Notes: generated from the letters alone by a model not told the origin. A stretch of DNA of 64,000 bases from Iphione sp. A-MEVVRFRX5 (GCA_976226885.1 OZ320315.1:97092001-97156000); one strand, 5' to 3'. Positions 1 to 64,000 are shown, counted from the stretch's first letter. Numbers and translations are program-made.

Positions 1-664
1 TGGCAACAATGGTTGTCTTTGCTGTCAAAGAGCTGGCCCTGTCTTCCAACGTGTGGTGCCGATTCGACCACTGCGTGGCAGATGAGTCTCCCTTTCCTTC
101 TCTCTGCAGGTCCTACTCCTGTTCTGGTCTCTGGTTGGGATCTCCTTTGCTTTTGCATTTAGAGTTGTCTGACCCTTAGGCTTCAGGGCGGTTGGGATGG
201 TAGGGCCATTCTTGGGCTCAGGAGTGGCAGTGACATCCAGGGGGGGATGTGGGGGGGGAGTTGGGTGCTCACTGAGCTCCTGCTTCTTGTGATCATCTTG
301 ATGGATGTCAACTGCACATGACCTGAAATACCTGAGGAGCCCAGAAGAGAATGCCTAGCCAAGTCACCTGCAGGAGGTATCTTAACTTTGCAGAGGATAA
401 CTGTACTGCCTACAGAGTTTCCTATATTCATATTTTGATTATTTCTTAGTCTCATGATGAGTGTTTGTATCATATTGCTTTGATTTGCGTTTATAAATTA
501 GGAGAAATCAATGAGTGTCCCTTCTAATGAAGTGGTCTTTTGGGGGAATGTTGTCAACTGAAGTACTGACTGTGAAGCCTCCTATGTCAAAAATAGTGTC
601 TTCCATCATTTCAGATTTATTTCATCGAGGTTCGTAAAATTAAGCATATTGCTTCTGTAATTGA

Positions 665-1025
665 TAAGAAAACCTCCTCCTGTAACCTCTGCGATTGTAC
701 CTGCCCCTGCCCCTGCCTCTGTAACGGCCTGAATAGCCCCTGGCAGGGAACTGAGGTTGGCACCTGACAAAACCCCATGAGGCGAGTCATAGTCTCCGGA
801 GATTCGATGTCTCTAAACTGTCCCCAAAAAGCATCATAGCTAATGCAGGAGCGTCTGGAGACACCAATCTTTTGTGTTCAGGGGCAAGAAAGGGTTTAAT
901 GTCATCTCTCGGCATTTTTATAAAGTAAGAATCAATGAGACCCAAGACAAAACCAAGGACATTATGGTACATATGGTACAACCCTTTCCAGATCTGTAAC
1001 AGCGATACAAGATGCTGGGTGTTAA
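665..1025 (-). pseudogene. DIRS-type gag (ORF1) C-terminal fragment
   Basis: ORF 787..1077 from FNTQ onward reads ...FIKMPRDDIKPFLAPEHKRLVSPDAPALAMMLFGDSLE (RRxxIKPxL...LFGDxL motif of DIRS gag). It is followed by an RG-rich tail GRYRGRGRGRYNRRGYRRR (my translation, ~670-730). The same motif occurs at 58417..58743. Confidence 0.7.
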
Positions 1026-1521
1026 AGAGGTCATCTACGGTAGGTAAAACGTGTGTGAGAGATACCATTGACAACATTTTTCTGAATGTAACTTTTCACG
1101 TCATACACCTCTGCATACGACAGATCAACAATTACCCTTTTGGTGCCATCACTCTTGTCCCTGGTCATGAGGGGGGCACTACAGACCACGGGGAAAACGG
1201 AGGTATGACAAACTGTGGATGGCGCGAGCCATAGGGGTGGTTGTCGAGTTGCCCCCCCTCCCAGCAGTAGGGGGGCTTGCGTACTGCATAGAAAAGCCGA
1301 ACTCTCTGCCGTTGAGGACTAGCTCATCATCAGGATGTCTTGTAGCAATTGCTCACCAGAAGGGGAGTGAAAGGGTCAAGGGGGATCTGGGCACTGCAGG
1401 CATTGTTGACGCCACGAACCTCGACTGCATCATACAGGTACTGAAGGTGAGGCTGGGCGAGCGGTGTTAGATGTGGCCACACATAAGCCCTACGGTTACA
1501 GAGAGCATCGCTGTACACCAC
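1025..1521 (-). pseudogene. Ngaro-type reverse transcriptase, N-terminal part
   Basis: YLYDAVEVRGVNNACSAQIPL (ORF 1330..1521), then in shifting frames LVLNGREFGFSMQY, DNHP, PFSPWSVVPPLMTRDKSDGTKRVIVDLSY and HVLPTVDDL; parallels 61549-62382. Confidence 0.85.
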
Positions 1522-2481
1522 GACAGGTGGCTGCTCCCTGAAATTAGAAAAGAAAATGGGGGAAAGGCCGGCTGTGTCGGGGGAGGTCTGGTGTACTACA
1601 ACCCGACGTGAGTAGTGATGGAGGGGGGCTGGGCTGTTGGCGGGGCTGTTGGGGCAACAACAGCCCCGCTGTCGTTGATGGAATTGGGATAGATGCCAGG
1701 TCTGGGTGAGGTGTTATGGTATGGGCCCCTACCCCCGCTCATCAATGGTTGGGCGGGGGCCCAAGCTCCTGGACTTGTTGTGGAGGTTCGGCTGTAGGTG
1801 CAGAGCCGGTGGGACAAATGACTGCAGACTTGCACCAGCTGGATATGCAGTACCGACCTGTTGTAGCGGGGTAGAGTGCACATGCGCTGCCGAGAGTTAG
1901 TTACAGTTGCAGGGTGACGTATTGACGACGTTGGGGCTTCACCTATAAGGCAGCCCAATGCTGGAACGCAGCAGCGTGTGCAGTGTACCGAGGTGCACGT
2001 GCACTCACCCCCTCTCGCCAGGGTTACAGTGGGCTGGGATTCCCACCGGTGTGCTGCGCGTAGTCTTTGCCAGCCGAGGCTGGACTTGATGTGGTGGGTA
2101 CTCACTCGGATGGTCGAGGATTGCTGGCGTTGATCAGTACTTTCGGAAGCCTGCACACAACAACAAAACGGTTGTCCTCAGGGCCCCCCCCCCCCGGACT
2201 ATATTTAACGTCGGGCCGGGGGAAGAACGACGGCGGGCAAGCCCAGATGTGGCCGGGAGAGACGTAACGATGATTGACAGGTGTCAGCGCAGTGTGAGTG
2301 GATGTGCAACCAGGCGTGACGAGTGTACGAGCACCCGTCACTCGCCCACCAGTCCAGTGCAACAGTGGTTGGGCCGACCACCGGCGTCTGGTTACACGAA
2401 AATTTGCTTCAACCGGTGGGGGGACACCACCGGGAAGTCTTCTGAATTGTACATGACCAAAGTAACATGTCTGCCACCACA

Positions 2482-2647
2482 ACATTCATGTCACTCACCC
2501 CCCAGTACCAGGGTTACAGCAGGTGGGCATGTCTGCCGGTGTAGGTCAGTACGGTTGTATAGTCAGTAGTGACACGTCTGTTTTCACATTCATGTCACTC
2601 ACCCCCCAGTACCAGGGTTACAGTAGGTGGGCAGGCCTGCCGGTGTA
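2482..2647. repeat. 62-bp direct repeat, 2 copies (2482-2543, 2586-2647), partial third copy near 2002-2030
   Basis: acattcatgtcactcaccccccagtaccagggttacagYaggtgggcaKgYctgccggtgta read directly twice, 104 bp apart. Confidence 0.9.
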
Positions 2648-3099
2648 CTGAACTATACGTGCAACAACGTAAATGTTCATGAGTTAGGGGTCACTACTCC
2701 CTTCCTCAGAACTGGCACCACTCAGTTTGGGTTACAGGCTGGTCAGACCATCGGCCCTGCCTATACGTTGTGCACAAGTAAGGATAGGGTTCCACTCACA
2801 CTAACACTAGACACCTACCTCTCAAAGCACGTCTGCTCCCTTCCAAGCCTGGGACCGTCCTGATGCCGAGAGGCAACTGAGGCCCCTTTATATACAGTGG
2901 CAGCCTGCCATGCAACAGCATCATGCCACCCCCATGGCTCAGCGGAGTGAGAAGGAGAGGTGGTTGAGCATAGGCTGATGGTCCGTGGTCGCTGACAAAT
3001 GGGGACTAGGGACTAGGGCTTGGGGAGTGGTGGCTCGACCTGCTGTCTAGTGCCTATTTCCTCGTAGCGGCAGGTCGTTGCTAATGAGTAGAGTTCTCA

Positions 3100-4265
3100 G
3101 GCTTATTGGTTTTCTTCTGCCTCTGCTGGTCAGGAGAGCGCTGGCGTGGAGGACGCTGCTGATCATCTCGTTTCACCATCTTTTGCTATCTCACACAGGC
3201 GTGGGCCACATGCTGGCACTCACGATTACCGATGCCATACCAGCATACGGCACACTTGTGGTGAAAGGTCATTCCTGCGTTGCCGTGCTGATCATGTTGG
3301 TCACACGTTGAGGAATTATACCACTGGCACAGCTATTGTCTTTGCTCATAGGACAAGGTGCCCCTAACAACTGAGAGTTGCATGTGTAGGGCCTAGATCC
3401 TCGCGGAGTCCTTCCACCTAAATGCCCCCTGTCTCTATACGTTCGTCGAGAAGCATAGACCTGTTACGACCATGAGGCCACCTCATCACAGCTGTATCCT
3501 CACATATATCGGCAATATGTCCCACTAGGGATGCGGCCTGAGACGTTGGGCGCAACTTCGTTGCAGCATGCATGCTCAATTCATAGACATACGCAGTAAG
3601 AGGGTCAGAGGCTGGCCTGTCCTCGATAGACTGCATCACATCAAATGGGACTGACATAAACAGCCTGCAGTAACGAACGAATGACCTCTTGATAGGGTCA
3701 TAAAATGGCTTACTGGCCGAATGTTTGAAGGGAACTATCCCAATCAGGACGGCATGTATTCTGGGTGAGCTGATCACCTACTTAATGCGTCGTCTGGGTG
3801 GAGAATCCTGGACGGGGCCTCTGTCTGCTCGCTGTCAGAGTCAGTGACGACAGTATGGCGCAGGCGTCCACGTGCTGAGGTGCATGGTTCTCGGGCTAGA
3901 CGAAGGCGAACGGCGAAGAGGGCCTATACATAGCTATGAACCCTCTGCCTGTTCTTCTTATGGTGTTTCTTAGGCCTTGTCAATTGTGTGCACAGGTCAT
4001 TGATGGTTTCTTCCATCCGCCCAAGACGGGCTGCAAGGTTTCGCACCGAATGCTGTGTAGCATCGGGACTTTGTGACTGTGAATAAACGATTGGCGAGGT
4101 GAGTTGATCTGACAATCCTGACATCTCAGACACAAAATATCGAAGTGAGTGAGTGGCAGTAGTCGTAGTAGAAGTACGGGTTCGGGCCCCGAAGGGGCCC
4201 AGGTGCTTCGCCCAGCAAGAGGTTTCCGGGCATGGAGTAGAGTGTCTCAGTTCAGTGCAGTGCAC
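3100..4265 (-). pseudogene. Ngaro-type gag with Cys/His cluster
   Basis: IADICEDTAVMRWPHGRNRSMLLDERIETG (ORF 3418..3777) and YNSSTCDQHDQHGNAGMTFHHKCAVCWYGIGNRECQHVAHAC (my translation, ~3190-3330) match the gag at 62937..63479 (ICEDATNGDWPAVRNWS; YNSSTCSEHDGH...HRCAVCWYG). Confidence 0.75.
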
Positions 4266-4276
4266 TATTAGAGAGG

Positions 4277-4322
4277 TTTGATTTGATTTGGAAAATGTTT
4301 ATTGAGGTGAAATATCACCCTC
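4277..4322 (-). terminator. LINE 3' end: stem-loop, AATAAA, (CAAAT)n tail
   Basis: Minus strand reads gagggtgatatttcacctc-aataaa-cattttc-caaatcaaatcaaa. Confidence 0.8.
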
Positions 4323-4745
4323 CAATGATGCTTTTCAACAACAACTCAGTGAAGTAGACACGGTACATCAGTAAGGTTGACAGTGCGTCAATATCTATGT
4401 TATGACAGAAATTGTATAAGTTTTAGGCTTAACATACAACTTACAGCTCATAATGTACTCCTATTAAACAATTCTTCATCAATCATATGCTAAATTTCAC
4501 TAATACGATTTCTCTATTATCTCAGTACATTCAATGTTTATAATGTACTCTAACCGGTCTTTTCCTTCCTCTAGATACAGAATTTAGCCGCTTAATTTTA
4601 AGTTCAATTGAACGTATGAAAGTTAAACCATCATCAATCATATACCCCAGAAACTTAAATCTTTCCACATGTTCTAGCAATCTCCCTCTGAGATACACAT
4701 CAAGATCAAAATTGCAGGCCTTTCCTAGCATCATATACTTACATT
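4277..4745 (-). mobile_element. 5'-truncated CR1/L2-group LINE 3' fragment
   Basis: Post-RT region MLGKACNFDLDVYLRGRLLEHVERFKFLGYMIDDGLTF (4531..4734); minus-strand AATAAA followed by (CAAAT)3 tail at 4277-4303. Confidence 0.8.
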
Positions 4746-5439
4746 TATCAGTGTCGAATTGAATTGAATTGAATTCTTTTATTGAGCGTCTCCGAGTGTA
4801 CAGAGCTGTTCTTGCACAATATGAGTAGTAAATGAGCTGACACAGGTATTGAAACAGTTAGAAAATTGCAGCAGTCAGTGGCATAACCAGTTATCAATTG
4901 ACCCAGAGGCAATACATAAGCACATGTCTTGGTATCAACAATTGACACGATATCAGCAATGCTGAGTAATGGACGCTAATGAGTTAATGTATCACAGCCG
5001 GCGTCAATATACATCTTAAGCTTCATTAACCGAATTAAATAAAGAGATACATTGATTACAAAAGTTACATAAGTTACATAAGTTGGCCATGAGCAATCCA
5101 CATGCAAGAAGACCCTATGCTCTCCAAGACACAGCTGTGGCTCCTGGCGACACAAAGCCTCCCTATAATAACACATCCCAGTACAGTAACTGTTTCAGAA
5201 GGCTCATAACTTGATCATGACTATGCCCCACTACCCTCTCAGCGTGTCACACAATTACCTTCATTCACATAACACAATTAACCTATCACATTCAGCACAA
5301 TATCATCCATCATTGTCATATCTCTTCTTGAACCATACCGCACCATAGGTGCAATCTGTCATTCACGACATGACATGTTCATTCATGACATGTTAAGATG
5401 GAGTTTCCAGGGTGCCTACTGATACTGGCCACAGGCAGC

Positions 5440-7737
5440 TCACGGCAGTCTCTTAGACTGTTTGAGGTTTGGCGGTAGACCATTCCACCTACGAGCACCC
5501 TGGTATCCCAGTGACTTGGCGAAAGCATCTGTCCTAGGCTTCCTCAACCTCACTCTAGGACTTACACTTGAACGAGTGCGCGTTTTCCCTTCCAGTGGGA
5601 AGTGACCCACTGTCACTAGCCTGTGGACAGCACAAAGACCCCGGTAACGGATAGTATCATCCACCGTTGCTATCTGCAGTAGGTCCCTTAGGCGGGATGC
5701 ACTCAAGAAATCTCCAACCTGCATGGCCATTCAGCAGCATCGATTCATATGCACCTGAAGATCTCGGAGTATGCTTCGTTTACATCCATAGTAGATCGCT
5801 GCATTATAGTGCAAGTGGCTCAATACCAGTGCTTTGTACAGTACTGCCCTTGCCCAGAAGGGAAGCACCCTCTTTGCTCTCGCAAGCATAGCCGCAATAC
5901 CCCAGGTTTTTGCCTGTTAAGAACTAGCTTGCACCATTCTTCAATTCGAGACAGTGATAGTTGTGTTTTCCGAGATAATGCCAAGGCACTACTGCCCCAA
6001 GTCACTATCGTAATATCGTCAGCGTACATATATACTCTATTCCACATCTTCCTAGTCACTAAGCGATGATTAATCAGGTCAAAGGCTTTACTCATGTCCA
6101 AAAAGGCACATGAGGCATGGCGGCCATAGTTAATGTCAGCCAGGACACCCTTTAGGAACATTGAGCATGCGACCGAGGTACCTCTCCCTTCTACAAAACT
6201 GTATTGGTGTTTTGAGAATATTTTGTTCTTCAAAGTGAATTTATTCAATTGGTCTATCACTATGCAGCAATTGGCAGGATACTAACTGGCTTATAATTCT
6301 TCGGGTCCAATGGCGAACCTCTCCTTAACAATGGAGTTATGGTAGCTAATTTCCAGGCCTGGGGGAAAATTGCTTCCCTCAGACACATGTTGATCAAATT
6401 TGTAAACCATGGTAGCATAACATTGAGCGCATCTTAATATTTGCATCGATAATCTTATTATACCGCTCGGTTTGGTTATCTTTGTGATCGAATTACCTTG
6501 CTTACAGCTTTACAAGTAAATGCATCAAAATTGTTCATAGGTTCATAATCATTTGCCATAATTTTAGCTGGGACATTGATGTTTAGATTAGCAGCCGGTT
6601 TAGTTACTGAGTCGAGGAAGTTTCTATTTAATGTTTCCGCTACATCATTCTTCTGTATGTCAGCCCTGTTCATTCTCAGAGCTATTTCTTTGTATTCTTT
6701 ATTCTTCCCGAAGACCATATAATTTAAGTTACCCCATAGTTTACTTTGGTTAGTCAAACTGTTTTCTATTTTTGTTCTGTTATGGTTTCGTTTGATGAAC
6801 CTTATTTCTTTGTTGTACAGATTACGAAAGAAACAGTATATCCTCTTATCGTCAGTATCTCTTGTGCGATAATATTTACGTCTGTAATAGTCCCTTTCAC
6901 ATCTCTTCTCACCTTTTTTAGTGACCACGGGGCTATACTATCAACTGCATTTATCAATTTATTACTGAACGTGTCCCATTGGTCATCTACATTCATATTA
7001 CCAAGATCCCAGTCATTTCCGTCCAATTTTGTTTTCAAATTTATGTACGAATAGTTACGGTAGGACCGAGCCCATATTGACTCCTCCGTAACTTTTGGCC
7101 GCTGATGTTTAATGTCAACTACTAACGGTACCTGGTCACTACCCCCATACTTGAACACCATTGCGTCCCTAACTGTTAAATCATTAGTTAAAAAACGATC
7201 TGGAGTTATCAGTTGTATAAGACCAAGGCCGCTTGCCCACGATTTTTAGCGTTGAAGCTCACGACTTTTCTTCAACCAATTCAAAGTAATATCTCCCATA
7301 ATATTAATTAATGGTTGGCTTCTGCTACGTAGTTGCTCTACTGATTTCTCCAACTTGGAGAGGAGTAGTTCTAGCCGAGATGCCGGTCTGCGATATACCA
7401 CAAAGTTGTATCTATTCTGACGCATTCCTACCTTTGTCCTACAACATACGTCTGCTGTCTGATCCGAATATTCAGGCAAAAGGTCATACTCACAGCTAGA
7501 TTTAACATATATCCCTACTCCTCCACCAGTTTTTTTGCCCGTCGCACCCCTCTCCATATCTACCCGGAGGAAGTCATACCCACGAGTGGCTACGAGTCCT
7601 GTTGGAATATACAGGCTTAACCAGCTCTCTGTAATTCCCAGAATATCAATTTTCTTATCTAATAGTAATAAGCTCACCTGATCTACTTTCCCAAGCAGAC
7701 TCCTTACATTCCAAACCCCAAACCGTAAGACTGTCAT
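5440..7737 (-). pseudogene. LINE ORF2 (APE endonuclease + RT), frameshifted and internally deleted
   Basis: APE: WNVRSL, ITESWL, GGGVGIY, VYRRP, MGD (7246..7737). RT: QYSFVEGRGT, FLDMSKAFD, YADD (5820..6260) with the GVPQGS segment missing. C-terminus KPRT...SLGYQGARRWNGLP. Confidence 0.9.
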
Positions 7738-7786
7738 GTATGTGGGTAGACTGTTTTATTTTAAAGAGACCTAAAATAAAACAGAC

Positions 7787-8330
7787 CTAGGCGTTACCTT
7801 TCTCCTTTGAGTTGCCCCCGAGAAGATACATCGCATTGTGTTCCCGAAGCATTACCGCTGCTGCAGCCTGGAAGTGAAGCCCCCAAATCGCTGCAGTCTC
7901 ATCTGTTGCATGGCATCCATCTCTCAGAAGTGAGTACCTTGATTTCAGCCTAGCTGCACAAATCCTATGTACGGGCCCATCAGTACCTGGTGTATATACT
8001 GAATGTTTTTGATTAAAGTCCCTAAAATCATGTTCATATTATAGACACATCTGTTTACACATGACTGGAAACGATTATCAAATGTACCAGGGCTATATCT
8101 CTTTAGATCGATCCCTGTAACTGGTGCAAATCCAAGTGGAACTTTTTCTAATATAGAGCGCAGTCTCACCTCAAACAGGGTAATAAATGCTTGTAACCAT
8201 AGAGTAAAAACTGTTGCATCATCATGCTGAGGAAATAATTCCCCAGTAGTTCTCACCTTCCTTATATATGTCAGTTGGGAACATGCCAGTATATGTACGC
8301 TCAAAATAAATTGTCACTATGCTCTACACA
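7787..8330 (-). pseudogene. SGNH/GDSL esterase ORF (family A), N-terminus missing
   Basis: ORF 7945..8304 (TLWLQAF...VPLGFAPVTGIDL), then LRDGCHATDETAAIW (block V DxxH); aligns with 45303-45896. Confidence 0.75.
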
Positions 8331-8499
8331 ATGTATGGAAACATGCTGTTACATACTTATCTTTCACATAGTTCCATAGCTGTGCGAGTGCTCTCTCCAT
8401 GCAGTTCAAAGCGGACGTCACCCATTGGCGTCAAAGGTGACACCCGTCACGCAGGCACACATACCGGTGGCGCCAATGACCATTATTTCTAGAGTGAAT

Positions 8500-9000
8500 C
8501 AGAGACATTGTGCAGGGAAATGGCACATTGTTGTGTAGATTGATGTGCACTATGAGACAATTTAGTTGCACGATCGCCTTTGAATGTGTATTGCCACTCC
8601 TCCCCGGTTCATATACCCATTCAGGCGATGGTTCAATGTTGAGTAATCAGAGCTGAAAATAGTAGATATTATCACATAGCTACCTGGGAAAGTATTCCTT
8701 AATAGATCTATCACCTCTGTATATTGCGCATCTATGTTGGATACTGCTTCTTCTACACTGTAGTGCCTTGGGGTCACATTCCTATTGTGTTGGCCCTCTA
8801 CACGCATTCGGTGCATGCTGGTCACATCATTCCAATCGGTCCATAGTATTATCGCCCAGGGACATGGTCCTCAATAGTTGATACATCCCCGCTGCGATAT
8901 ATCACATATATGTCCTCCAGGATAGAACAGTATCCTCGCATCCCATCGATTGTCTGTGAATAAATGGCATATGCCTCTGCCATGGCTACTGGTGAGCATC
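8500..9000 (-). pseudogene. SGNH esterase ORF (family D-like), degenerate
   Basis: TSSHGRG and ILFYPGG (my translation, ~8900-9000) and VIISTIFSSDYSTLNHRLNGY (8562..8825) align with the intact ORF 23584..24276. Confidence 0.8.
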
Positions 9001-9303
9001 AAGACCGGTCGTCTCATGGTCAGTCCATTCTCCTACTGACCCACAGCGTTTGAATGCGATTGTAACTGTTCATTGCCTCACAATCATAGGTTGAATTGAA
9101 TTGAATTGAATTTTATTGTCACAGAAAATAACATCTCCTAATATTGGAGCTCTTCAGAACTGGACAACTAGTGCATACAGTCAATGTGTCTTCACATACA
9201 GTAACATAATACATTGTATACTTTCTACATTGTGAAATGTATTACATGTCTTTCGATAAGGCATTCAGTAAATTACAGAAGTTTTTCATGGATTTGCAGT
9301 TTC

Positions 9304-11960
9304 TTAGAGAGAGTGGCAGCTCGTTCCACCACGTTGCACCAACTTCAAATAAAGATCTTCGAAAATACTGTGTTTTGACTTATACATGCATATTTTCGTA
9401 TTAGTGCTAGATCTGGTTTTGGTTTTTGCTCTTAATGATATTTTGTCAGATAGTACTAGGAGGTGGATCAGTTGTAAGGTGGATACTGTAATACGCCGTT
9501 CAAGTTTGTCTATGTCATAGACGAGTAGTGGGTTCTGTTTGTTTCCAGTCAGATTCTTACACATCATTACCCTAGCACATTTGTTGTAGTTCCTTTGTAG
9601 TTTGTTGAGATATTGTTTTTTAACACCACAGAGTAATGGGGATAGGTAATCTACGAAAGGGTATATATACAGTTTGTATAGTGTAGTCATCAATTGTGTC
9701 GGTATATATCTCTTTATTTTCCAAGTCTATATGCAGAGTACCACATTTTGCTTATTGTGTCATTTATAGTTTCTTTCCATGTCAGTTTTTTGTTCAAAAT
9801 GTAACCTAGAATTTTGATACTTCCCTGCCGCTTTATGGAATGCCCCTGATACGTAATGATATTCAAATTATCAGAGATATTTCCGATGGTACAGAAGGTG
9901 CTCTTTTCATGACTTAGTAGTAGGTTGTTTTTGTTACACCAGTCTACAGTATGGGCATGTGCTTTCAAAAGGTTTTCTCTAAGTTCCCCTTCGTTTTTTC
10001 CACTAACCACGAATGTAATGTCATCTGCATATAGGGTGATTTGAGTTTTTGGTGGGATGTTATCAACAATGTCATTGATGCACATGGCAAATCCCAGAGG
10101 CCCCATGGTACTTCCTTGTGGAATACCATGGGACTGGGGTAGTATCTTAGACCATTTACCATTTACATGTACATACTGTTTCTGTTGGTGGAAATATTCA
10201 TCAACAAGTGAAGTTATACTGTTTGCTGCCCCTTCCTTTTCAAGAATTTTGACCTTGGTTAGGTCAAAGGCAATTACAGCCGTGAGCTGTCCTGTCTCAA
10301 TGCTGTCAAGAATATTTTTAATAATTTCAGTAATGGCTGTTTTGGTAGATCGGTTCGGAAGGAAGCCATTGATTCACCGACCAAAAGTTGATCCTAAATA
10401 AATCATTAGTTAGCTGTTTACACAGCAACTGCTCAAATAATTTGCCTGGCAGAGGCAAGTTACTGATGGGCCTGTAGTTTGGAATTTTCTCCCGTTCTCC
10501 CTTCTTAAATATCGGTACCGCTCTTGCTAGTTTCCAGTCATCAACATATTTACCTTGACTCAGGATATCATTGAACAAAGTTGTGAGTTCAGGAATTAGC
10601 ATAGTCAGAGAATCTTTCAGTAGTCTAGTGGTTATATCGGGAATCTTGCTAGATTTAGTAAGGTTGATTCTGCTTACCACTTTGGTTACATCTTGCATAC
10701 TAAAAGGCTTAATGCAGATATTGTCATTTCCCATACGCCTTTTGAGGATCGTGTTGGTAGGCATTTCTTTTTTAATCTTATCTATGGTATCAATGAAATA
10801 ATTGTTGAAAGCATCAGGTATATGATCATGGCATAGTGGTACGTCTTCTAAAGTTATGAGTTCATGTAGTGTTCCCCATAATTTGGACTGGTTACCTTGA
10901 TATTGTAAGAGTTTTCTGAAATAGTACTGTTGGTAAACTATACGTACCTCTGTTTTTACCTTTTTATCCAGGTATCTATATATGTTGCATGCATCAGCGT
11001 CACCGTAATGTCTGTATTTGCGTAGAAAGTATTGTCCGTCTTTTATTAGCTCCTGCAGGCTTTTTGGTATGGGAACCTTTCTTCCTTGTTTACCACCCTC
11101 CTTTTGTTGTTTAATTCTACATGCCCCTTGTATACTCTTTTTTATTACTTCTGTAATACTATCCCAGAAATCTTTTGAATCATTTCCCCTTCTGATAGTC
11201 GCTCTAAGTTCTTGTATCTTTGATTGAAACTTACTGCTGGAGTAATTACTAGTATCATAATGTGTTGTAGTGACATAGCGACTATTTCGATACCGTGTAC
11301 CCGTCTTATAGTTCAAGCTTATTCCCAAATGATCACTATATGAGGTATCTAATATGCAAGCATAATGGAACACCTCTGTATTGGAGAAAATTAGATCATT
11401 CATTTTGTTTGTATTTACCATTGTACTTTCTTGAATCAGTTGATTGAAGCCAAGGTTACTCAAAACACTAGCTAACGATTTAAATTTACCACTCATTTCA
11501 GACCAGTCAACATTAAAATCACCTATAAGTAACATACGCATGTTGTTGTGTTTCTGCCAACTCGTAATAGTTGTCTGGAGAGAGTCAGCAAATTTGGTAA
11601 CTGAACTGTCTGGCAGCCTATATATGATCATTAGCACTACGGGCCTGAATTTTTTATACGAGACTCTGAGTGACAGAGATTCGAACACATCGTTGTTAAC
11701 AGACAGTGCATCTACTATGGTTGTGCTACAGTCGTCATTAACATAGGCTAAAATACCTCCACCTGTCGATTTTTTCAATGAGAGTCTATCTTGTCTGAAC
11801 AGTTGGTACCCCTCTAGAGAGATAGTTGCGTCAGCAGTGTGGCGGTTTAGCCAGGTTTCTGTGAAACAGTTTATAATGTAGTCACCTGTGGTAATGTCGT
11901 CATGTATGTATCTCAGCTTTTTGTAGATACTACGTACGTCATGATGGACAATGGCGATTG
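9304..11960 (-). pseudogene. LINE ORF2 (APE + RT), several frameshifts
   Basis: FTETWL (~11850); GGGILAY, IYRLP, IGDFNVD, SYSDH, NYRPISNLPLPGKLFE (10327..11778); GVPQGSTMGP and LYADD (9714..10162). Confidence 0.92.
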
Positions 11961-12029
11961 CATCTTAACACATCAGTGTATAGTAGATATACCAGAAGTA
12001 GTGTCAATAAGCAACGCAGTAGTTGTCCA

Positions 12030-12611: not shown

Positions 12612-12657
12612 AGCGTGCCTGCAAGCAGACAGCCAACAAAAGTTTCAATATAGTTGC

Positions 12658-14256: not shown

Positions 14257-14280
14257 TGTGCGGGATAACCAGTGCAATTT

Positions 14281-30715: not shown

Positions 30716-30759
30716 AAGACTCATTTTCCCTGTAGTAGGGCATTGTATTCGTCGTCTAG

Positions 30760-43728: not shown

Positions 43729-43732
43729 TGGT

Positions 43733-50804: not shown

Positions 50805-50828
50805 ACTACCTCCAGACAGTCTCTTCAT

Positions 50829-53682: not shown

Positions 53683-54869
53683 GAAACCAAAATTACAAGC
53701 CTTCAAGACACATACAGCTGTTTTTGAGTCACTCGAGTCAATGTCATTTGACTTGTCTCGGCATATGGGTTAAGCTGAATGATTTTTGAATTTTTCTGTT
53801 CAATTCCTCCTGTAAACTTAGGTGGCTATCAAGAGTGAATACTAAGTATTTTTACACAGTTACTTTCTCTAGTTTATGGCCATTAACCTAAATATTCAGG
53901 AGGGATTTCTTGTGCTTATTATGTTTGGAGGTAAATAACATTGACTGCGTCTTTTGGTAGCTGATTTTCACCCCGTTAGCTCTACACCGAGTCAAGTCTA
54001 CTAATTTCTTCATTGAGAGTTTTCGTTATGTTGTAAAGTATCACAGTGTCGTCTGCGTACATAATGCATTTGCTTTTGGTGAAACAGGAAATACTATCAT
54101 TAATGAATAGTGCAAACAACATCGGACCCAATATGCCTCCTTGGGGTACACCTAGCCGCAGCATAGTTTCAGGTGAAGTATGTCCATTTACTTTTGTTCT
54201 TATGCTTCTATTAGTTCAGTAATTATCAAAGTACATTACCCCCTTACCCCCTTGTGCTTTGATTGTTTTAGTAAAACTGAGTGCTGGAGGGAGTCAAATG
54301 CTTTTGCATAATCTATGAAAACAGCACCCGTTAACTTTGCAGTATTTAAACCCTCCATTATATAGTGAATCACATCATCTATGGCATGCATGGTTGATTT
54401 GCCTCGTCGTTGTGGGGATAATAGGTTGTTCTCTTCTATGAATTTTTTGGTCTGGCTGTGTACTATTTTTTCTAGGATTTTTGCAGGCAGGGGTAAAATA
54501 CTAATTGGGCGGTATGAGTTAGCAGGTCTCGTACAGCCCTTGCCCTTATATAGAGGGGTTATATGTGCGCACTTCCACATTTGTGGCATCCTGTTCATTT
54601 CCAATGATCTATTCATTAGCGATGTCACAATACTGCTCAGCGATTTCAGGCATGGTAATATACTTTGTGCTGGGTACAAGTCAATACCACTTGGTTTATC
54701 TGGGGATAATTTTTCAATTATTTTTTTGACTCTAAATCAGTTAGTATTTTCTAGCTGTAATGTGATCCAGCATGTAATAAAATAGACACTGCTTATCCGG
54801 TCTCAGTCTGCACGTCCTTTCTCTCCCAGATGGCAGCCATTGTGTAGCTTCTGAAGCTTGTTCGTGTGT

Positions 54870-55463
54870 CTACCGTTGGCATGACCATGGACTATGCTCC
54901 CAACGTGCCAAGTCGCCGTGATGTCGATTCATCCTTCTGATGTAACCATTTATACGATAGCCACAATCGTTCATCAATATCTGGTCCCTTGATGGTGGCG
55001 ATTTTTTCTGAAACAGGCCCTCCAAGCAATACTTAGTTATATCTGAATATGTGTGGGCATAGAGTTTCAGCGAAGACATGTAACGTTTCTTTATTCTGGC
55101 ATAACAAGTATCCAGTAGGAGACATAAATGCATGTAAGTCAGATCAATATCATAATCTGGCAGATATATTTGCCTACGAATAGTGCGGTCCGGCAGCATT
55201 GCCTGTCGATCTAAGTTAGTAATGTCATTAGTACCAGCCAGGATTGCAATATACAGTGGGTCTGATGGGAAATGATACGATAGTACCTTGTCTGCTATCC
55301 CTGCGAGTCCTATGCCGGGCTGCGATATTACCGGTAGAGTCACCCCAGAGCGAAGTAAATCAGTGTGTAGCTGCTTCCCATGGGAGTCAGTGAAGAAGTA
55401 CAGGTCAGGTGGATGTGCATTATTCTGTGCCATTGTCTCCCTCTGAACCATGCTCTGTGACAC
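54870..55463 (-). pseudogene. SGNH esterase (family E), C-terminal frameshift
   Basis: LYFFTDSHGK, SQPGI, ILAGTND, RQIYLPD; shifted frame ends LHNGCHL. Confidence 0.88.
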
Positions 55464-55479
55464 CGGTCTCTTGACTGAG

Positions 55480-55790
55480 ACCTAACCTCAACCGGTCTAG
55501 TCTCACCTGTCCAATTTTGACCTTCGAATTTGCTATTGCCCACAGCTCTTGAGTGCAGAGTGGCCCCTGCTCCCCAATGTGTGTCTAGCGACGCTTCAAC
55601 CAATGGGAACAGGCCTGTGGACATCAGCCTATCCAAAAGAGCTTTGTTCTGTTCAAATTTCACATGTGTTAACTTGAACATTAGTGTCTCTATACAGTCT
55701 CTTGGCTTTGTGACGGTTCGGTGGTTCCCATTACCTCGGCATAGAGAGTGTGGTCATTCACTTCCCTTGCTAGGGTTGCTGGGAGCTCTT
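55480..55790 (-). pseudogene. NADAR C-terminal half
   Basis: LTHVKFEQNKALLDRLMSTG...LVEASLDTHWGAG...FEGQNWTG (55340..55681); cut upstream by a poly(A) tail at 55805. Confidence 0.9.
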
Positions 55791-58244
55791 ATTCAATTGA
55801 ATTGTTTTTTTTTTTAAACTTTTATTTTTCCTGGCGAATTGTCACCAGGCCATAACAACACAGTCAATACATTGATAAAATTCTGGTATATTACGTACAT
55901 TAAACAAACATAGAATGAAAAAATGATTGGTCGTACCTCCTCTCTTGAGAGGTACCATATATACGATGACCTATTAGTATCTGTCTAAATAACCAAATAA
56001 GTAAACACTGTTTTAATGTGTGGAAAGACATGAGAGCGTATCCCAACATCAAATGTCTGGTAACATTATATGCGTTACTAGTTGGTGTTGAACTATCCAT
56101 TAGGAGACTTTCCAATTCTCCTTCAGCCTTTTATTCAGTAGATAATATTGCAATCTATTTCTGAAACTAATGTATGGTAAACTTTTGAAACTTCTATGCA
56201 GCTCATTCCATATATATATGCTATGATAACTGGAACTATGTTTGTATAGATTTATTAATGGCTTCGGTAGGGGTACCTGGGGATTTCGGTTACGTGATTC
56301 ACACTTCAGGGTTAACTCAAGAAGTCTAGGATGATGTAACATCAGTATAAAATACTTATTTCTCTCCTTTAGGCCCATTATTGAAAATCTCTCAATACCT
56401 GTAACGTAGTCTTGGGTTGCTATTCTCAGTGCCTTACTTAGCTGTCTTTCCAGTCTAATGAATAATCCATTATCGGTATAAAAAAAGATTTTATTAATTG
56501 TATTGTCACATTTATGTTGCTCTTCTTGCGGACCTGTTGAAACAGATTCAACATACTATAGGTCTTGTTCAATTTGCTTTCAAGTTCCATACTCATACTA
56601 AGATGGCTGTCCAATGTCACTCCTAAGTATTCAAATTGTGTAACCTGTATTAATTCCACTTCATTTAACTTCAGCCCCAGCTTAAATTTCTTGCGTTTAC
56701 TCTTATTCATTAACTATTATTCCATTTAGTCTGCACCATTCAGATAATTTTCCTATGTCATATTGCAGTTTATCTTTGATAATTAATGGATCAGTCCCTT
56801 TGGCATATAGTACTGTATCATCTGCATACATAAGACTTTCACACTCTGTGTAAGAACTTATGCTATCATTAATAAACAGATTAAACATTATTGGACCCAA
56901 GATGTTTCCTTGTGGAACACCAGTCCGCAGAGGTAGTTTCTCAGATATAGTACCATTTGCTTTAGTCCTTATCATTCGATTTGACAGGTATGAGCTAAAC
57001 CATGGGATTACATCTTTAAAACCCATTTTACCTAATTTACGTAATAGGATACTATGATTAATGGTATCAAAAGCTTTACTATAATCGATAAAGACTGCAT
57101 CAACTATTTGTCTATTGTTAATTGCATCATATATGTACGAGGTTAAGTGGTCTATTGCCTTTATTGTCGATTTTCCCTTCTGGAATCCAAATTGTTTCTT
57201 CGATGTTTTAAATGACAAATTTATTTAGTTGACCAAATACTATACTCTCTAAAATTTTTGCAGTTATGGGTAATATAGATATTGGTCGGAAGTTAGTTGC
57301 TTCAGTCTTTTTCCCTTTCCCTTTATAAATTGGAGTGATTATTGCAGAATTCCATTCCTCTGGGACAATTGATTAAGTGAGTAAAGATGTCTATACATTC
57401 ATACAATATATCTTTCATTATTTGTGTATTGCAGAAATCAAGCCCACTTGGTTTAGTTTCTTTTTGTTTACGAATATAATTCTTTACTTCTTCTGGAGTC
57501 ACAGGGGTAAAAGCAAAACTTTTTAATGGACATAGTACATTCTGTAACTGTAGTTGATGTGTACCATGAAAGGGAGTTTCACCAATTGAGGCGAAATACC
57601 GATTCAAAGTGGTTGCCACATCTGAAGTGTCATCTGTACAGATATATATAGGTGCCTGCTTCTTGGTTGTACCCATTAAATTTTTTAATACTCCCCAATA
57701 CTTTTTTGGTGTACCCTTAGTCTCTGAGATTTTTTTAGCAAAGAAGACTGCAATGTCTTTCTGAATCTTCTTCACCACCACTGCCTGTGCCCTGGCATTT
57801 CTCAACTTCAAGCTATCTTTGTCTAAATAAGCTTGTTTAAATAATTGATTTTTTTCACTAATCAATTTTCTGGTACATAGACTAATCTGGTGTGATTCAG
57901 CTGTACTTGGTTTGCTACAACGTTGGGGTGTATTTTCATTTAGAAAGCGAGTTATTAATTCCTTAAAGGAGTACCATTGATAATCAACATCCTCCGATCG
58001 CATTAATACTTGGGACGATGTCGCAGTCAAATATAAATTTAGTTTGTTTTTATTTCCTCATTCCAGTGTCTATATCTAATAGACATTAGCGGGGGTATAT
58101 TCAGCTCAAATTTAACGATGGTGAAGATTTCATAGTGATCGCTTAGAAATAATCTATTCATGTTAGTATTACAATAGATATGACGATCTAATAAAACCAA
58201 GTCTATACAAGTCGATGTTTGCTGTATGTGTGATTCTAATAAGT

Positions 58245-58400
58245 GAAATTAGTTTTGTAAGTGCGGGAGAAAGCTTGGTGTTTACCATAGAATGCAATAT
58301 AAGTGCCTGTATGGCACTCTGACGCCTTTTCTAGACTAATCCCGGGGGGAAGAGAGTGTTTTGCTTGTATAGACACTACCATTGATGACCAGTAAGCTGC
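58245..58400 (-). pseudogene. ORF1 CTD end and NADAR N-terminal remnant
   Basis: My translation: LVINGSVY, then LPPGISLEKASECHTGTYIAFYGKHQAFSRT; parallels 46624-46760 and LPHGLTLESA...LAFRG in unit B. Confidence 0.7.
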
Positions 58401-58760
58401 TTCTGAGACAGCTGCATCAGAGGCTGTGGTTGTTGCTGCTGTTTTGGTCCCGACTGGTTGGGGGACTGCACCTGAAGGTAAGGGGTTTGCCCCTGTAACC
58501 CCGAGGGTAACGGTATCTCCCTCTGTACCTGGAATAACCTCTGGGGTATTGACCTCTCTGAAACCCCCCCCCCCTTTTAGATCGAAAGTCTACCCTATTG
58601 CAAAGTTTTGTCATACTTTCTGAAGACCTGAGAGAACTTTCCAACGTGTCTCCAAAGAGAAGGGTAGATGAAGGGGGGCAATCCAAAGATGCAAGCCGTT
58701 TATGTTCGGGTAAGAGATGTGGTTTTATTTCATCTCTCCTCATTTTTATGAGATGAGTTG
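58400..58760 (-). pseudogene. DIRS-type gag C-terminal fragment
   Basis: MRRDEIKPHLLPEHKRLASLDCPPSSTLLFGDTLE followed by an RG/Y-rich tail (58417..58743). Confidence 0.75.
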
Positions 58761-60265
58761 CCAGGTGTCAAATCCTCGTTCACCCATACTCCTTTTAAGG
58801 TCTTGAGATTTGCCCTGCCCTGCAACATTTTTGATTATGATAATGTTTTACATAGGCACACCTTGATATCTCGGTGTTTGCCGATTTGTTTCTGGCCTAG
58901 ACCGTAACAATTGTCAATTTTGTGTAGTCTGAATGACCGGTTGGCCTTTTGGAATACATCACATATTTTCTTACATACCGCATCGTATGTTTCACCTACT
59001 TCTTCAGTGAGTCCCGCTACAATGAGGTCTCCCTTTTTAGAGCGTTAATATGGTCATTTCTTTCTGTGATATATTTTAGTGTTTTCTGGGCCATTTTCCA
59101 CTTGTTACTCCCTTCGCTTCTAGTTCACTGATCTTTTGCTCTTAAGGTTTCATTCTCCGATTCAAGTTTCAATATTTTGTCTTTGTGTTTACCCACGTTT
59201 GATTAGATCACAATAAGCTTTTCTTTGTTTTCCTGGATACCCTTAGAAAACAGCTCATGCATTTTTTTTGTCTCAGCTGTATGCTCTGTAAGTGCATGAG
59301 TTACATATTCTGAAACACTGAGTGTAATTCTGTTCTGAATAGGCTCTGAAGTTCAGCTCCCATTTCCCTGAACATATTTCCTATGGAGGACTCATCACCC
59401 ACTCCCTGTAGTGTTGCTGTGTTGCCCTTAGCCATTTCAAGTTCAAGCTTAGATGGATTTTCATTACCTGATTCACATAGACAACCAGCGCTATCTGAAT
59501 ACGCAGCTGAATCATCTTTGATTTTCTCAGTGTCATTGTCAATATCAATCGGACTTACCGCAGTTCATTTTACTCCAGCTCCCTTCAGAGAGTTAGCGGC
59601 TAGTGGAAACTCCTCTCGCTGTTGACTTGATGACGGTTGAGGTGTTGAGACTAGTGGTGTATTCATTAAAGTGTCAACATAGTCTGCGGCAGAGTGAGTG
59701 GAACAGTCCAGGACTAAGCTGTTTCCATCTTCTTGCTTAGGGCTACGAGACAATAATTCGGTTCTTTTTGTCGTCGTAGCTGAGTAATTTTACATTATCT
59801 TTTACGAGGACCTTACTCGATACGTATTGTTTTCCTTGTTCGAGTATATTGTGTATCTAGGCCGATGATAATGGATTGTGTCTTCCCCCCAGCCTCGACA
59901 CGTCTGCTCAGCTCGACGCCATCATATCACTATTTATATTTGACTTAGCCTTTGCTAAGATTTCAAAACATCACCTCGATCAGGGGTTTAGCATATTAAG
60001 GATTCAGAGTATGTTAGGGAGTCATCTCAGTTCTTTTTGTGTTCAAGGTTGGTATCAACTGGGCTTACCTCTTTCCTCTTTACTCCTGCTTCTCCTGTTC
60101 CTCTCGGTTGCGGTTTCTTAGTGTTCTGGTCTGGTGTTGACTGCTCTGAGGCTTGCTGTACCAGTGTCGAGACTGTAGATGACGCGATTACTGCCTCCAC
60201 ATAGCTCGCGGAGGTGTCTAGTAGAATGTTTTGGTCGAGACAAAATCCAGAAACTACGGCTTTAT
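58760..60265 (-). pseudogene. LINE ORF1 fragments (S/T/P-rich N-termini, coiled coil, RRM-like)
   Basis: LIVAGL...QGRANLKTLKGVWVNEDLTP (my translation, ~58770-59030) matches 46785..47039; N-terminal pieces at 59565..59753 and in the distal part of 60027..60371. Confidence 0.65.
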
Positions 60266-61310
60266 TCAGGAGGGCATGGCATTTTTCCATGTGGAGCCAA
60301 ATCCCTCTGGCGCAGGTGGCGATGACCTGATCCCTGATCCTAGGATGTCCACGGTGGCCGCGTTGTTGCACAGAAGGCTGACGTGATGTCCGGCATCTTC
60401 TTCCATTACCAGCGAGTGCACTGCAGCCAGGCAGTTCATTGCCTCAAGTTGGGAGATGTGCTGGTTGGTCGCTATGTCATCAGGCCATTCGAGGCTGTAG
60501 TGCCTGATGCCATCCTCAGCACCTGCCCCAGTCAGGCAGGCGTCTGCCGCGATGGTACGGTGTGGTATGCCCTGGGGGACACACCGTTATGTTGGCCTGA
60601 GAAGTCCTTAAACCAACGTAGGTCCGCTCTGAACTCATGGTCAACCTGTATGTAGTCATCCCCTGTCCTGAGCTTCTCCAGGATGCGGGCAATGAACAGT
60701 TAAGCCATGGGAATGGCTTTCACCACGTGGTTCACCTTCCCCATGACTGACAGTACCTGGCGCCGCGTGAGCTGGCTGTACTGTAGGATGTTGGCAAATA
60801 GTGTGTGGTACTCGACCAGCTTCTCTCATGGGATCGTGAGTGTCGTGGCCATGGTGTCGACTTGGATTCCTAGCATGTCACGGTTGTGGCAGGTCCTTGG
60901 ACCTTGTGTGAGGCCAAGCGACCGGAGGAAGCGTATGACTAAGTCGGTGTGGGCGCCGGTGTGGCGATGATCTGGTGCTGTGAGTACGAGGTCGTCCAGG
61001 TACATCAGTGGTGATACTCCATGCCCTCGTAGGTGCGTGCCTTAGTATGAACTCAGCCGCTTTTTGCATGACGACAGCACTGAGGCGGGTGCCGAACAGG
61101 AGCGCTGTGTCTATGTAGTACTTGTCATCAACTTGGGGACACAGCGGGGGCCAATGGGACGGGCACACCAGAAGGTGTCGGTATGCCCGTTTAAGGTCCA
61201 CCACTGCCAGGTAGCAGGGTTCTTCATTTGCCTTGATCACGTCAACGAGCTGTGTGCCTGCTTCATGGTAATGGAGTGCTGCTGTGCCGCCCGTCTGAAG
61301 TAACTGAGAT
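60265..61310 (-). pseudogene. Ngaro-type RT + RNase H (second lineage)
   Basis: VVDLKRAYRH...YYIDTALLFGTRLSAVVMQK (60878..61366); MYLDDL near 61000; LGIQVDT...MGKVNHVVKAIP; RIRDQVIATCARGIWLH. Confidence 0.9.
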
Positions 61311-61830
61311 ACGCACGTACCTTTTCTATTAGGGATAGAGATGTGGCCGGCCTGAATGTTGATCACCGCTCCAAGCCATTTGTTCGTTCTCGTGTGTGGC
61401 TGGTGCTTGGAGGCTGACTGTTAGTCCCAGAGCACTGATCTTTGTGCGAGCGTGATCTGTTCATGTGCCGATTCCTTATCGGGAGAGGCTATGAACAAAT
61501 CGTCCAAGTACATCAATGCACATATATTTTCTTTTCTTAGCATACAGATTATAAATTCCGCCACCCGCTGCATACATACTGCAGAGCACCTGGCTCCAAA
61601 TGGGAGCGCGGTATCAATGTAATACTCTCCGTGAGTGCAGAGTCCGAGGAGAGGCCAGTCGCCTGGCGAAACCCTGAAGTGTTGATATAAGCGTGCTTGA
61701 GATCTACAACTGAGATGTATGGTGGGTTGTCAAAGCACAGCATCATTTCAACTGCCAAGTCAACTGTCGGTAGGGAGTGGTGGTAATATATCCCGTTGAT
61801 GGTATTCTTCTCCACATAGCGGTTGAGATT

Positions 61831-61876
61831 GGCATCTTCTGCGTACGACAAGTGGCATCTTCTGCGTACGACAAGT
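61831..61876. repeat. Exact 23-bp tandem duplication that frameshifts the RT
   Basis: ggcatcttctgcgtacgacaagt twice; removing one copy joins MDLSYAEDA to NLNRYVEKN. Confidence 0.95.
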
Positions 61877-62936
61877 CCATGTTGACCCATCTAGCTCCAT
61901 CTGCCTTGGGCTGTGTCATGATTTGAGCGATATTGCACCAAGGCATGAGTGGCAGATGTGGGAATGGACCTATGAGTGCACCGTGCTCCCGCTCTGTGAA
62001 ATGCCAGTGCTGACGGATGGTTGTCTTGGAAAACCGGATGTAGTGGGGGACCTCTGTATCCCAGCGAAAAACCAAATGCCACGCCGTTTAAGACAAACTG
62101 GTCGTCTGGTTGACCCATTGCTGTATTTATCCACTTGTCCAGCTTGAGCGTGGAGTCGAGGTGTAGTCTCGCCCCTGCAGCATTTTGTACTCTAGTGCTG
62201 GCCACAACATTGTACAAGTATGCCAATTTCTTCAGGAACTGTGCAACCGGCTCGGGCCAGGTCTCCGATGCCCCGCCAGGATATACTGCGGCAGCGGCAG
62301 GACGATGGCGGTATCCTGGTATCTTGAAGGCCGTCACTGTCATAGTCCACTGAATGGGAGGACTCGATATCAGTGACAACATAACCTTGTTCGTGTGTCG
62401 AGTGCCGGTGCACCTTCACATATGGGAGGGGGATGACCGCATGTAGCGAATAGTCCTTGGACATGGCCAAATTGTTTCGATGACCTAATAATGGTGTCGA
62501 TGTGAGAAGCGGGGGCCCCAGGTCAAATAGTACTGCTGTAGCATCTAGTTTTTTTGGCTCCTTTTCTTGCTTCTCTTCTCGTCTCCACTTTGGCTCATCT
62601 TGCTTCTCATTACGTTGTAGTTGCTGTTGCAGCTGAGCCTGTTGGTCTGATTCCTTTAAGCCAGGCGTACCGGCCAGGGGGGTGGGTGCGCTAATTGGTG
62701 CGCCGGTAGTGGTTTCTGACCCTACTGGGTCACCACAGGCAGCAACAGAGACAGAAACAGGTATCATGGACACACCAACAGACACAGTACTGAGGGAGCA
62801 TTCTACCCCCTCTGCACTGGTCTGTTTAGTCTTTTTAGCAAATCTGCCAGAGGAAGATCTCTTGCCTCTCTTTTGCTGACTAGGCTGCTCAGCTGGCATG
62901 CCCATGATAGAGGAGGCCAAGTCCATGATACCACAA

Positions 62937-63888
62937 TCACAAAAGCAATAAACACAAAATCAACAAAGCAAAGTTGAAAAAATACTCCCTTTGATGATCC
63001 TGATAGCAATAGAAATAGCAGAAAGATAGAACAGTGACAGAACAGTAAGTCTTCATGCACCCCTTCCTGGCACAGGCCATAGCGGTGTCCTGGCAGTCTT
63101 TGTTTTGCACACCGTACCAGCACACTGCGCACCTGTGCCAGTACATAAGTGGACCTTCCTTGTGGCCGTCATGTTCGCTACATGTTGACGAATTGTACAT
63201 GGGACATGGATGTCGCCTTTGGTCCTCCGTAAGGTTGCCCTTGATTAACGAGAGACGAGTATGGAGGCGATGAATATGGTCCTCCTGGAACCATGAGAGT
63301 TTTCCCTGGTCGATGTTATCAATAGTTGTGAGGGACCAATTCCTCACCGCCGGCCAGTCCCCATTGGTTGCATCCTCACATATCTCTGAGAGATGTATCA
63401 GGACATGGCATAGCTCGAATTCCATAGAGAAATCATCCAAGATCCGCACACAGAAGCCGAGGATATACTCCGAAAGCAAGAGGGTGTTTCCTAACAGGGA
63501 CAGCTAAATCTCGTGGAAGTGACACATAAGGACGCCATCTTAGATAAGTGTCCTGAGTGACTGGGTCTGGATATATCTTACCCGTCGCCGATCCAAAGTT
63601 GATATTCTCCCGTTCCAACCAGTTTCTTCTGCCATATTCTGAGTATCTGCCATTACGGTAGTCCTCAAGCGAGCGATACTGGTACGACTCAGTTCTGTGG
63701 TCGCAGTCATCCTTTGCCGATCTGCATTCCTCGCCTTTTGTTCGGTGCTCATGACTGCCCTCTCGGGAGCCTCGCTCCACCTCGCTACGTTTAGACTTGG
63801 ATTTGGACTTGGTTGTTGACTTGGGCGTCGAGGTCTTGACTATGCATTTCGCCTTGGTTTTCACGGCCTTGGTCTTTTTCCGACTCAC
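62937..63888 (-). pseudogene. Ngaro-type gag with Cys/His cluster, one frameshift
   Basis: PYVSLPR; HLSEICEDATNGDWPAVRNWS...IDQGKLSW; CPMYNSSTCSEHDGH...HRCAVCW...C...AMAC. Confidence 0.82.
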
Positions 63889-64000
63889 CTCATGCTTCTG
63901 CTCCTCATGTTGAGGAGATTAGCAATGCACTCCTCAATACGCTTTTGGTCCAGGGTACCAGTAGACAGAACTGAGGGAGTAGAATCCGAGTTCTAGGGCT

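Follow-up and report, generated by a model that had tools for sequence, protein, structure and literature searches.

A dense, strictly one-strand array of LINE insertions in Iphione sp., possibly a unistrand piRNA cluster

Why should every mobile element with a readable direction in 64 kb of the Iphione sp. genome lie on the same strand? The window, by which we mean the whole stretch of 64,000 nucleotides that was analysed, belongs to an array in which independent insertions are densely packed and keep strictly to one strand, and which has a real edge. An earlier note on this DNA had placed all elements on the minus strand and described the plus-strand open reading frames (ORFs) as antisense shadows. 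None of the 104 plus-strand ORFs of at least 70 aa in the whole window matches any Pfam family, and transposon protein homology amounts to 34,346 bp on the minus strand and 0 bp on the plus strand. The minus-strand placement holds for at least 14 LINEs and for one ORF with a DUF3504 domain; several GC-rich pieces have no readable strand. The 124 minus-strand ORFs gave Pfam matches to RVT_1 (14), NADAR (6), two endonuclease families (5 and 4), DUF3504 (1) and GDSL (1). Among ORFs of at least 150 aa, 29 of 30 are on the minus strand; the protein-level self-matches of minus-strand ORFs within the window (tblastn) fall on that strand in 262 of 262 cases, and weak matches, with E from 1e-4 to 1, divide into 22 minus and 2 plus. 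Homology to transposon proteins covers 54% of the window and the remainder is unclassified, so that "almost no non-TE DNA", as the locus had been described, is borne out for about half of it.

Collinear chaining of ORF2 matches separates 14 or more LINE copies, each of them on the minus strand, and the features that follow, in window order, share that orientation. The leftmost is an RT fragment at 4591-4770 (ORF2 aa ~697-757), which tblastn chaining distinguishes from LINE A. LINE A itself (5056-9005; Pfam Exo_endo_phos, tblastn, TRF) comprises an esterase-type ORF1 (8377-9005), an EN-RT ORF2 (5452-7737) and a candidate 3' microsatellite tail (5056-5084). LINE B (9091-14280; Pfam NADAR 1e-16, Exo_endo_phos_2) has a NADAR-bearing ORF1 (12661-14280), an EN-RT ORF2 (9361-11988) and a (TTGAA)n tail (9091-9112), and is followed by a piece of the NADAR ORF1 of another LINE (14415-15126; Pfam NADAR 8e-8). 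LINE C (17492-19231; Pfam RVT_1) is 5'-truncated and retains ORF2 aa ~349-914, and LINE D (19853-24934; Pfam RVT_1 2e-37 plus EN) is full length, with NADAR (24452-24904), esterase (23587-24279) and an intact ORF2 of 863 aa (20062-22653). LINE E (25134-26895) preserves an endonuclease fragment (25351-25815) and an esterase-type ORF1 (26239-26895). Next come the endonuclease fragment of LINE F (28434-28934), the C-terminal RT fragment of LINE G (31924-32323; tblastn) and, by tblastn chaining, the RT half of LINE H (32777-33845; ORF2 aa ~452-853). LINE I (35403-41253; Pfam), full length and the youngest, carries NADAR (40564-41253), a GDSL esterase (39921-40562) and an intact 924-aa ORF2 (35400-38174). 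Chaining also recovered the 3'-truncated LINE K (41850-43650; ORF2 aa 21-656) and the EN and RT pieces of LINE L (44347-45191); an esterase-type ORF1 fragment at 46246-46600 is 64-71% identical in amino acids to 26233-26784. LINE M (47659-53011; Pfam NADAR 8.5e-25, RVT_1) is near full length, with a NADAR ORF1 (51860-53011), an esterase remnant and an ORF2 in pieces (48279-50540). LINE N (53747-55690; tblastn) consists of an RT piece, an esterase-type ORF1 and a NADAR remnant, and LINE O (56456-59038) of an RT (Pfam 1e-25) and an ORF1 remnant. Candidate tails, read on the sense strand, vary by lineage and include (TTCAA)n, (AATTC)n and (CTTATGTAA)n (TRF). Two other tracts were considered as tails and set aside: (ATGAAT)3 at 50682-50699 actually lies in the spacer between ORF1 and ORF2 of LINE M, and a plus-strand A-rich tract at 46038-46145, which might have marked a plus-strand retroposon, is embedded in 1 kb that is single-copy in the genome.

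Since the LINE copies share only 22-57% protein identity with each other and tandem duplication was not found, they represent separate insertions. Self-BLASTN of the window returned only seven short direct repeats (1.55 kb in total, 69-95% identity) and no inverted repeats, and tandem or segmental duplication was rejected for want of in-register blocks of high identity. For the 15 orientable insertions of the window alone, the two-sided binomial probability of complete co-orientation is 6e-5 (the earlier note had put it at roughly 0.0005 for 12 insertions); it falls to 2e-6 once a sample at 97.00 Mb, described below, is added. These values, together with the absence of N runs and duplicated blocks from the window and the mutual divergence of its elements, make chance, or an error of assembly (contig collapse or chimerism, for instance), an exceedingly improbable source of the pattern. 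Rfam and tRNA scans of the window were empty.

The variety of elements is narrower than had been claimed, and consists of LINEs and one tyrosine-recombinase (YR) element. The latter, the sole non-LINE element with a readable direction in the window, is a Crypton-like ORF on the minus strand (15564-16472; Pfam DUF3504 3e-12); a frameshifted paralogue, also minus, occurs in the 97.00 Mb sample. What the earlier note called four Ngaro fragments and two pieces of DIRS gag proved unverifiable; these correspond to GC-rich segments (~0.8-4.3, 27.2-31.8 and 58.4-63.9 kb). Pfam gave them no match with E allowed to reach 1, the 1.84 billion representative proteins searched contained no real homologue, and the Atlas score was below recognition level. 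The lone hit in the protein search, of 42.6 bits, was judged spurious, the 906-aa target carrying unrelated acyltransferase domains. The segments are three copies of an unclassified repeat: copy A (805-4298); copy B (27252-31756), which is 83-86% identical in DNA to copy A and is split by a 2.6-kb insertion carrying LINE F; and copy C (58420-63918), which contains a 390-bp high-copy repeat at 62658-63049. The copies are direct to one another; no other orientation can be read from them, and their coding strand is unassignable. The argument that elements of differing integration chemistry share the bias accordingly stands on the DUF3504 ORF and its 97.00 Mb paralogue, the Ngaro and DIRS part of it not being verifiable.

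The earlier note had also proposed comparing the strand bias of the window with the genome average and finding where it ends. The control was a set of 10-kb samples, one per 100 kb, from 95.1-96.9 Mb of the same contig (C4), in which seven elements are plus and four minus; intact Gypsy elements occur there in either orientation. In the 97.00 Mb sample, ~82-92 kb to the left of the window, five fragments were found and all are minus. Fisher's test against the control gives P = 1.3e-4. The mixed samples up to 96.9 Mb and the all-minus sample at 97.00 Mb place the left edge of the array between 96.91 and 97.00 Mb. From the 97.00 Mb sample to the end of the window (C4, 97.00-97.156 Mb), a distance of at least 156 kb, the data show no exception to the bias. 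Elsewhere in the genome, two of the LINE families of the window are distributed as 24 plus and 14 minus and as 13 plus and 18 minus, and this presence on both strands rules out an artefact of family or assembly. The LINE I family has copies that are 90-95% identical on six other contigs, on both strands, and the one further copy seen within the array, at C4:97.2485 Mb, is co-oriented; the closest genomic DNA relatives of LINE D, again on both strands, are only 67-74% identical genome-wide. The fragments thus belong to families that are, or formerly were, active elsewhere in the genome. Their ages extend from frameshifted relics to the family with 90-95% identical copies, and this range, combined with the diversity of lineages, indicates that the orientation rule is long-standing and has applied up to recent insertions.

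A neutral bias of insertion would account for such a rule with no transcript at all, if target-primed reverse transcription (TPRT) preferentially used the tails, or the T-rich antisense strand, of resident LINEs, so that head-to-tail insertion reinforced itself. Because the window is almost purely LINE with a single YR ORF, a LINE-specific bias of this kind is possible on the window alone. Its plus strand is indeed T-rich, with an AT skew of -0.15 in the TE-covered DNA and T7 runs numbering 38 on the plus and 12 on the minus strand, and several 5'-truncated copies start within ~100 bp of the microsatellite tail of the preceding copy, as LINE A does after the LINE B tail, (TTGAA)n at 9091-9112. 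However, the candidate tails differ between lineages, so that tail homology cannot link the copies, and a threefold excess of T runs is insufficient to yield 15 of 15. Several copies are 3'-truncated, which is not a product of such a mechanism; the recombinase ORFs, in the window and at 97.00 Mb, are oriented alike, and the same LINE families occupy both strands elsewhere. We regard this explanation as improbable.

The reading that we favour, at a probability of roughly 45%, is that the array marks a long plus-strand transcription unit that retains only antisense insertions, and that this unit is most probably a unistrand piRNA cluster. RNA polymerase II would start near 96.91-97.00 Mb and proceed rightwards, giving a plus-strand transcript. 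Insertions in the sense direction would bring polyadenylation and splice signals into the transcript and be lost, while antisense insertions would be retained, and perhaps even favoured if antisense piRNAs directed at the same families are made from the transcript. The same purifying logic underlies the antisense bias of LINE and LTR elements in introns, and a similar layout could arise within a giant intron, or several, of a coding or long non-coding gene on the plus strand, through selection against sense signals and with no role for small RNAs. Short exons would evade an ORF test at 70 aa or more. In long introns the antisense retrotransposon bias is partial, LINEs being the most affected, and exons flank the TE-filled stretches. 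The array resembles this situation in that insertions appear to be selected by their direction with respect to a long unit of transcription, but it differs in the completeness of the bias over at least 156 kb, a near-100% level far above what is usual in introns; among ORFs of at least 70 aa in the window no exon was detected, and none of the 104 on the plus strand matches Pfam. An intronic origin seems unlikely. As regards the putative transcript, the plus strand contains 29 AATAAA motifs against 24-26 expected from composition; the motif is not depleted beyond composition and so adds no further footprint of selection for read-through. Neither a promoter nor a first exon was recognised in the DNA covered, which comprised the window and the samples to its left.

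Unistrand clusters with near-complete antisense orientation of their elements are documented mainly in Drosophila and mosquitoes. Those of Aedes and Anopheles hold co-oriented TE and viral fragments, and the array shares with them a one-strand arrangement of unrelated mobile-element fragments outside Drosophila; they differ in being defined by small RNA mapping and in usually measuring tens of kb to ~100 kb. A sequence criterion alone has served in Drosophila to locate regions, 227-1,085 kb in size, that are rich in TEs and biased to one strand, and the flam-like unistrand clusters among the candidates were confirmed by small RNA data in both species having such data (van Lopik et al. 2023, PMC10643416). 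The array has in common with flamenco and these clusters the dense, fragmentary and nested TE copies, nearly all opposite to the presumed transcript, and the sharp edge on what would be the promoter side. However, flam-like clusters are enriched in Gypsy-type endogenous retroviruses, and Gypsy alone drives their strand bias (PMC10643416), whereas the window is without LTR elements and contains CR1/L2-like LINEs, with NADAR and esterase ORF1 proteins, and the recombinase element. Searches with the Pfam rve, RNase H and gag-protease models found no match on either strand of the window. With no Gypsy-type enrichment in the window, the locus is not flam-like in the strict Drosophila sense, which does not bar a unistrand cluster of other content. 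Somewhat more tentatively than the favoured reading as a whole, then, we suggest that this may be a master unistrand piRNA locus of a non-arthropod invertebrate, built from LINEs and tyrosine-recombinase elements and not from endogenous retroviruses.

If the array is a piRNA cluster, this architecture would be known from one more phylum and in a form dominated by LINEs; the "antisense trap" of the flamenco type would not be confined to insects and would be able to police non-LTR elements. New chromosome-level assemblies could then also be searched for such loci by sequence alone, with strict co-orientation as the marker. If, alternatively, the region is not transcribed, strictly co-oriented independent insertions would call for a new explanation of how orientation is enforced. 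Against the cluster reading, a study that profiled one annelid, Capitella, found no large piRNA cluster in it (PMC8915122). The Iphione genome contains five multi-exon loci with a Piwi domain, the PIWI and AGO clades being pooled in this count, and one Maelstrom-domain exon that scores above the curated cut-off.

All transposable elements of the window whose orientation can be read lie on the minus strand of C4 (OZ320315.1), a 118.4-Mb contig of a 1.18-Gb assembly in 89 contigs, and no N runs occur within the 64 kb. The stop-to-stop ORFs of at least 70 aa (104 plus, 124 minus) were all cut from the window, and each strand set was compared with Pfam; none of the 104 plus-strand ORFs had a match at E up to 0.001, and the 124 minus-strand ORFs matched RVT_1 (14), NADAR (6), Exo_endo_phos (5), Exo_endo_phos_2 (4), DUF3504 (1) and GDSL lipase (1). 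The minus strand also holds 29 of the 30 ORFs of at least 150 aa. When every ORF of at least 100 aa was searched as protein against the window itself, all 262 non-self matches of minus-strand queries fell on the minus strand, and the 8 matches of plus-strand queries fall as shadows on those LINE regions. Homology to transposon proteins covers 34,346 bp on the minus strand versus 0 bp on the plus strand, sub-threshold matches (E between 1e-4 and 1) number 22 minus versus 2 plus, and in 57 of 64 one-kb bins the plus strand has more T than A. The earlier note had placed every element on the minus strand; for the orientable ones these counts bear it out, and the one-strand layout, the Ngaro and DIRS labels excepted, is real and highly non-random. 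The sole plus-strand feature of the window resembling a retroposon tail is an A-rich low-complexity tract at 46038-46145 in otherwise single-copy DNA; as no repeat family ends there, it gives no evidence of such an element.

Tandem or segmental duplication was rejected because self-BLASTN of the window found no inverted repeats and no direct matches beyond seven short ones that total 1.55 kb. Collinear chaining of matches to two intact ORF2 proteins distinguishes at least 14 separate LINE copies, and their pairwise protein identity of 22–57% indicates that they belong to different lineages. Three minus-strand copies are complete or almost complete and carry NADAR, esterase and endonuclease-reverse transcriptase (EN-RT) regions: LINE D (19.9-24.9 kb, 19853-24934; ORF2 of 863 aa), LINE I (35.4-41.3 kb, 35403-41253; ORF2 of 924 aa) and LINE M (47.7-53.0 kb, 47659-53011). 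The other copies are 5'- or 3'-truncated and frameshifted. The one non-LINE element of readable orientation in the window is a minus-strand DUF3504 ORF at 15564-16472 (303 aa, identified by Pfam), a Crypton-type tyrosine recombinase. A two-sided binomial test on these 15 insertions gives P = 6e-5; with this value, and with no duplicated blocks in the self-comparison, chance or misassembly is a very unlikely explanation.

The gene order in the full-length LINEs is NADAR-domain ORF, GDSL-esterase ORF and EN-RT ORF2, so that NADAR and esterase occur in one element; LINE B (9361-14280) has NADAR without the esterase, and LINE A (5452-9005) the esterase only. The ORF2 of LINE D (20062-22653, minus) is fully open, yet among the 40 genomic copies that score best against it even the closest at DNA level are only 67–74% identical; either a lineage of very low copy number inserted here recently, or selection has preserved the reading frame.

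The four Ngaro fragments and two DIRS gag pieces that had been counted among the co-oriented elements presumably correspond to three GC-rich segments at 0.8-4.3, 27.2-31.8 and 58.4-63.9 kb (copies A, B and C). These are in direct orientation, A and B sharing 83–86% DNA identity and C resembling both at 40–60% at the protein level. Relaxing the Pfam cut-off to E up to 1 brought no match, and Atlas offered no usable lead; the single match among 1.84 billion representative proteins, at 42.6 bits, was treated as spurious because the matched protein bears unrelated acyltransferase domains. The labels are thus not borne out, the sense strand of these segments is unreadable for want of a Pfam or credible protein match, and the diversity of transposon classes is thinner than first stated. 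Inside copy C, a 390-bp segment (62658-63049), whose minus strand has an open frame starting with ATG, has about 900 candidate genomic copies of 89–96% identity on both strands; short, young and present in high copy number, this repeat is of unassigned class. The approximately 90-bp segment at 31709-31800, with many genomic copies (75–88% identity, both strands), is probably a MITE or SINE fragment.

The strand bias was compared with its surroundings in 10-kb samples taken at 100-kb intervals over 95.1-97.0 Mb of C4, using a small library of Pfam-verified transposon proteins from the window and samples. The 19 samples from 95.1 to 96.9 Mb gave 7 plus and 4 minus matches, whereas L020, the 97.00-Mb sample some 82-92 kb to the left of the window (AT skew -0.149), contained four LINE fragments and one DUF3504 fragment, all five minus (array vs flank, Fisher's P 1.3e-4). 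This places the left edge of the array, the one-strand block containing the window, between 96.91 and 97.00 Mb; with the window itself (97,092,001-97,156,000), these data support the array over 97.00-97.156 Mb. Across the genome, members of the LINE I and LINE D families occur on both strands (24 plus/14 minus and 13 plus/18 minus among the matches listed), which excludes a family-level or assembly-level strand artefact; the single further in-array copy among those matches, at C4:97,248,172-97,250,710, is co-oriented. If new LINEs preferred to insert into the tails of LINEs already present, or into their T-rich antisense strand, mechanism alone could generate such an array, and the LINE dominance of the window, a 3:1 surplus of plus-strand T runs and some tail-to-5' junctions between copies suggest it; yet candidate tails differ between lineages, several copies are 3'-truncated, the recombinase ORFs of the window and L020 are co-oriented, and the same families use both strands elsewhere, which together make this explanation improbable.

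Besides orientation, array and flank differ in transposon class and age. Intact Gypsy polyproteins are present on both strands in the flank samples (95.1-96.9 Mb), and no LTR-element domains were found in the window.

The observed layout is what a long plus-strand transcription unit would produce if it lost its sense insertions and either tolerated or favoured those in antisense. The best available reading of the array, to which we give a probability of roughly 45% on sequence evidence, is a unistrand piRNA cluster; of the earlier proposal of a cluster-like trap, the one-strand array of independent insertions stands and the Ngaro/DIRS diversity is not confirmed. In Drosophila, TE-rich regions of 227-1,085 kb with a strong strand bias, chosen by sequence alone, gave one-strand piRNAs in both candidate species with small RNA data (PMC10643416). 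A piRNA pathway is plausibly present in the host, as the genome encodes five Piwi-domain loci and one Maelstrom-domain exon. Since LINE I, the youngest element (relatives elsewhere in the genome are 90–95% identical), is co-oriented with the rest, whatever enforces the one-strand rule acted recently. Against or neutral to a piRNA cluster are the LINE content, unlike the Gypsy content of flamenco-type loci, the lack of a large cluster in an annelid small RNA survey (PMC8915122), and the lack of plus-strand AATAAA depletion relative to composition in the window (29 observed, 24-26 expected). The same orientation filtering would operate in a giant intron, or in another long transcript that yields no piRNAs, but this is unlikely, if somewhat less so than insertion preference, as plus-strand coding signal was not found among the 104 ORFs and complete bias is unusual over such a span. 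If the array is indeed a piRNA cluster, it would add to a known kind of locus a member from a new host group whose content is LINE instead of retroviral.

Several features of the flank may be recorded. The sample just left of the array (L019, 96.900-96.910 Mb), which has no orientable transposable element, is packed with long di- and tetranucleotide microsatellites, e.g. (AG)154, (TC)69 and (AC)40, and has a strong positive AT skew. Apparently intact Gypsy elements, on both strands, lie in the samples at 95.10, 96.40 and 96.60 Mb (L001, L014, L016), with long open pol frames of up to 1,318 aa (L016). At about 95.905 Mb (L009:4871-5890, minus), an uninterrupted and apparently intronless ORF of 340 aa encodes an EamA-type transporter (Pfam 1.4e-13); bacterial and fungal clusters are among its nearest in Atlas.
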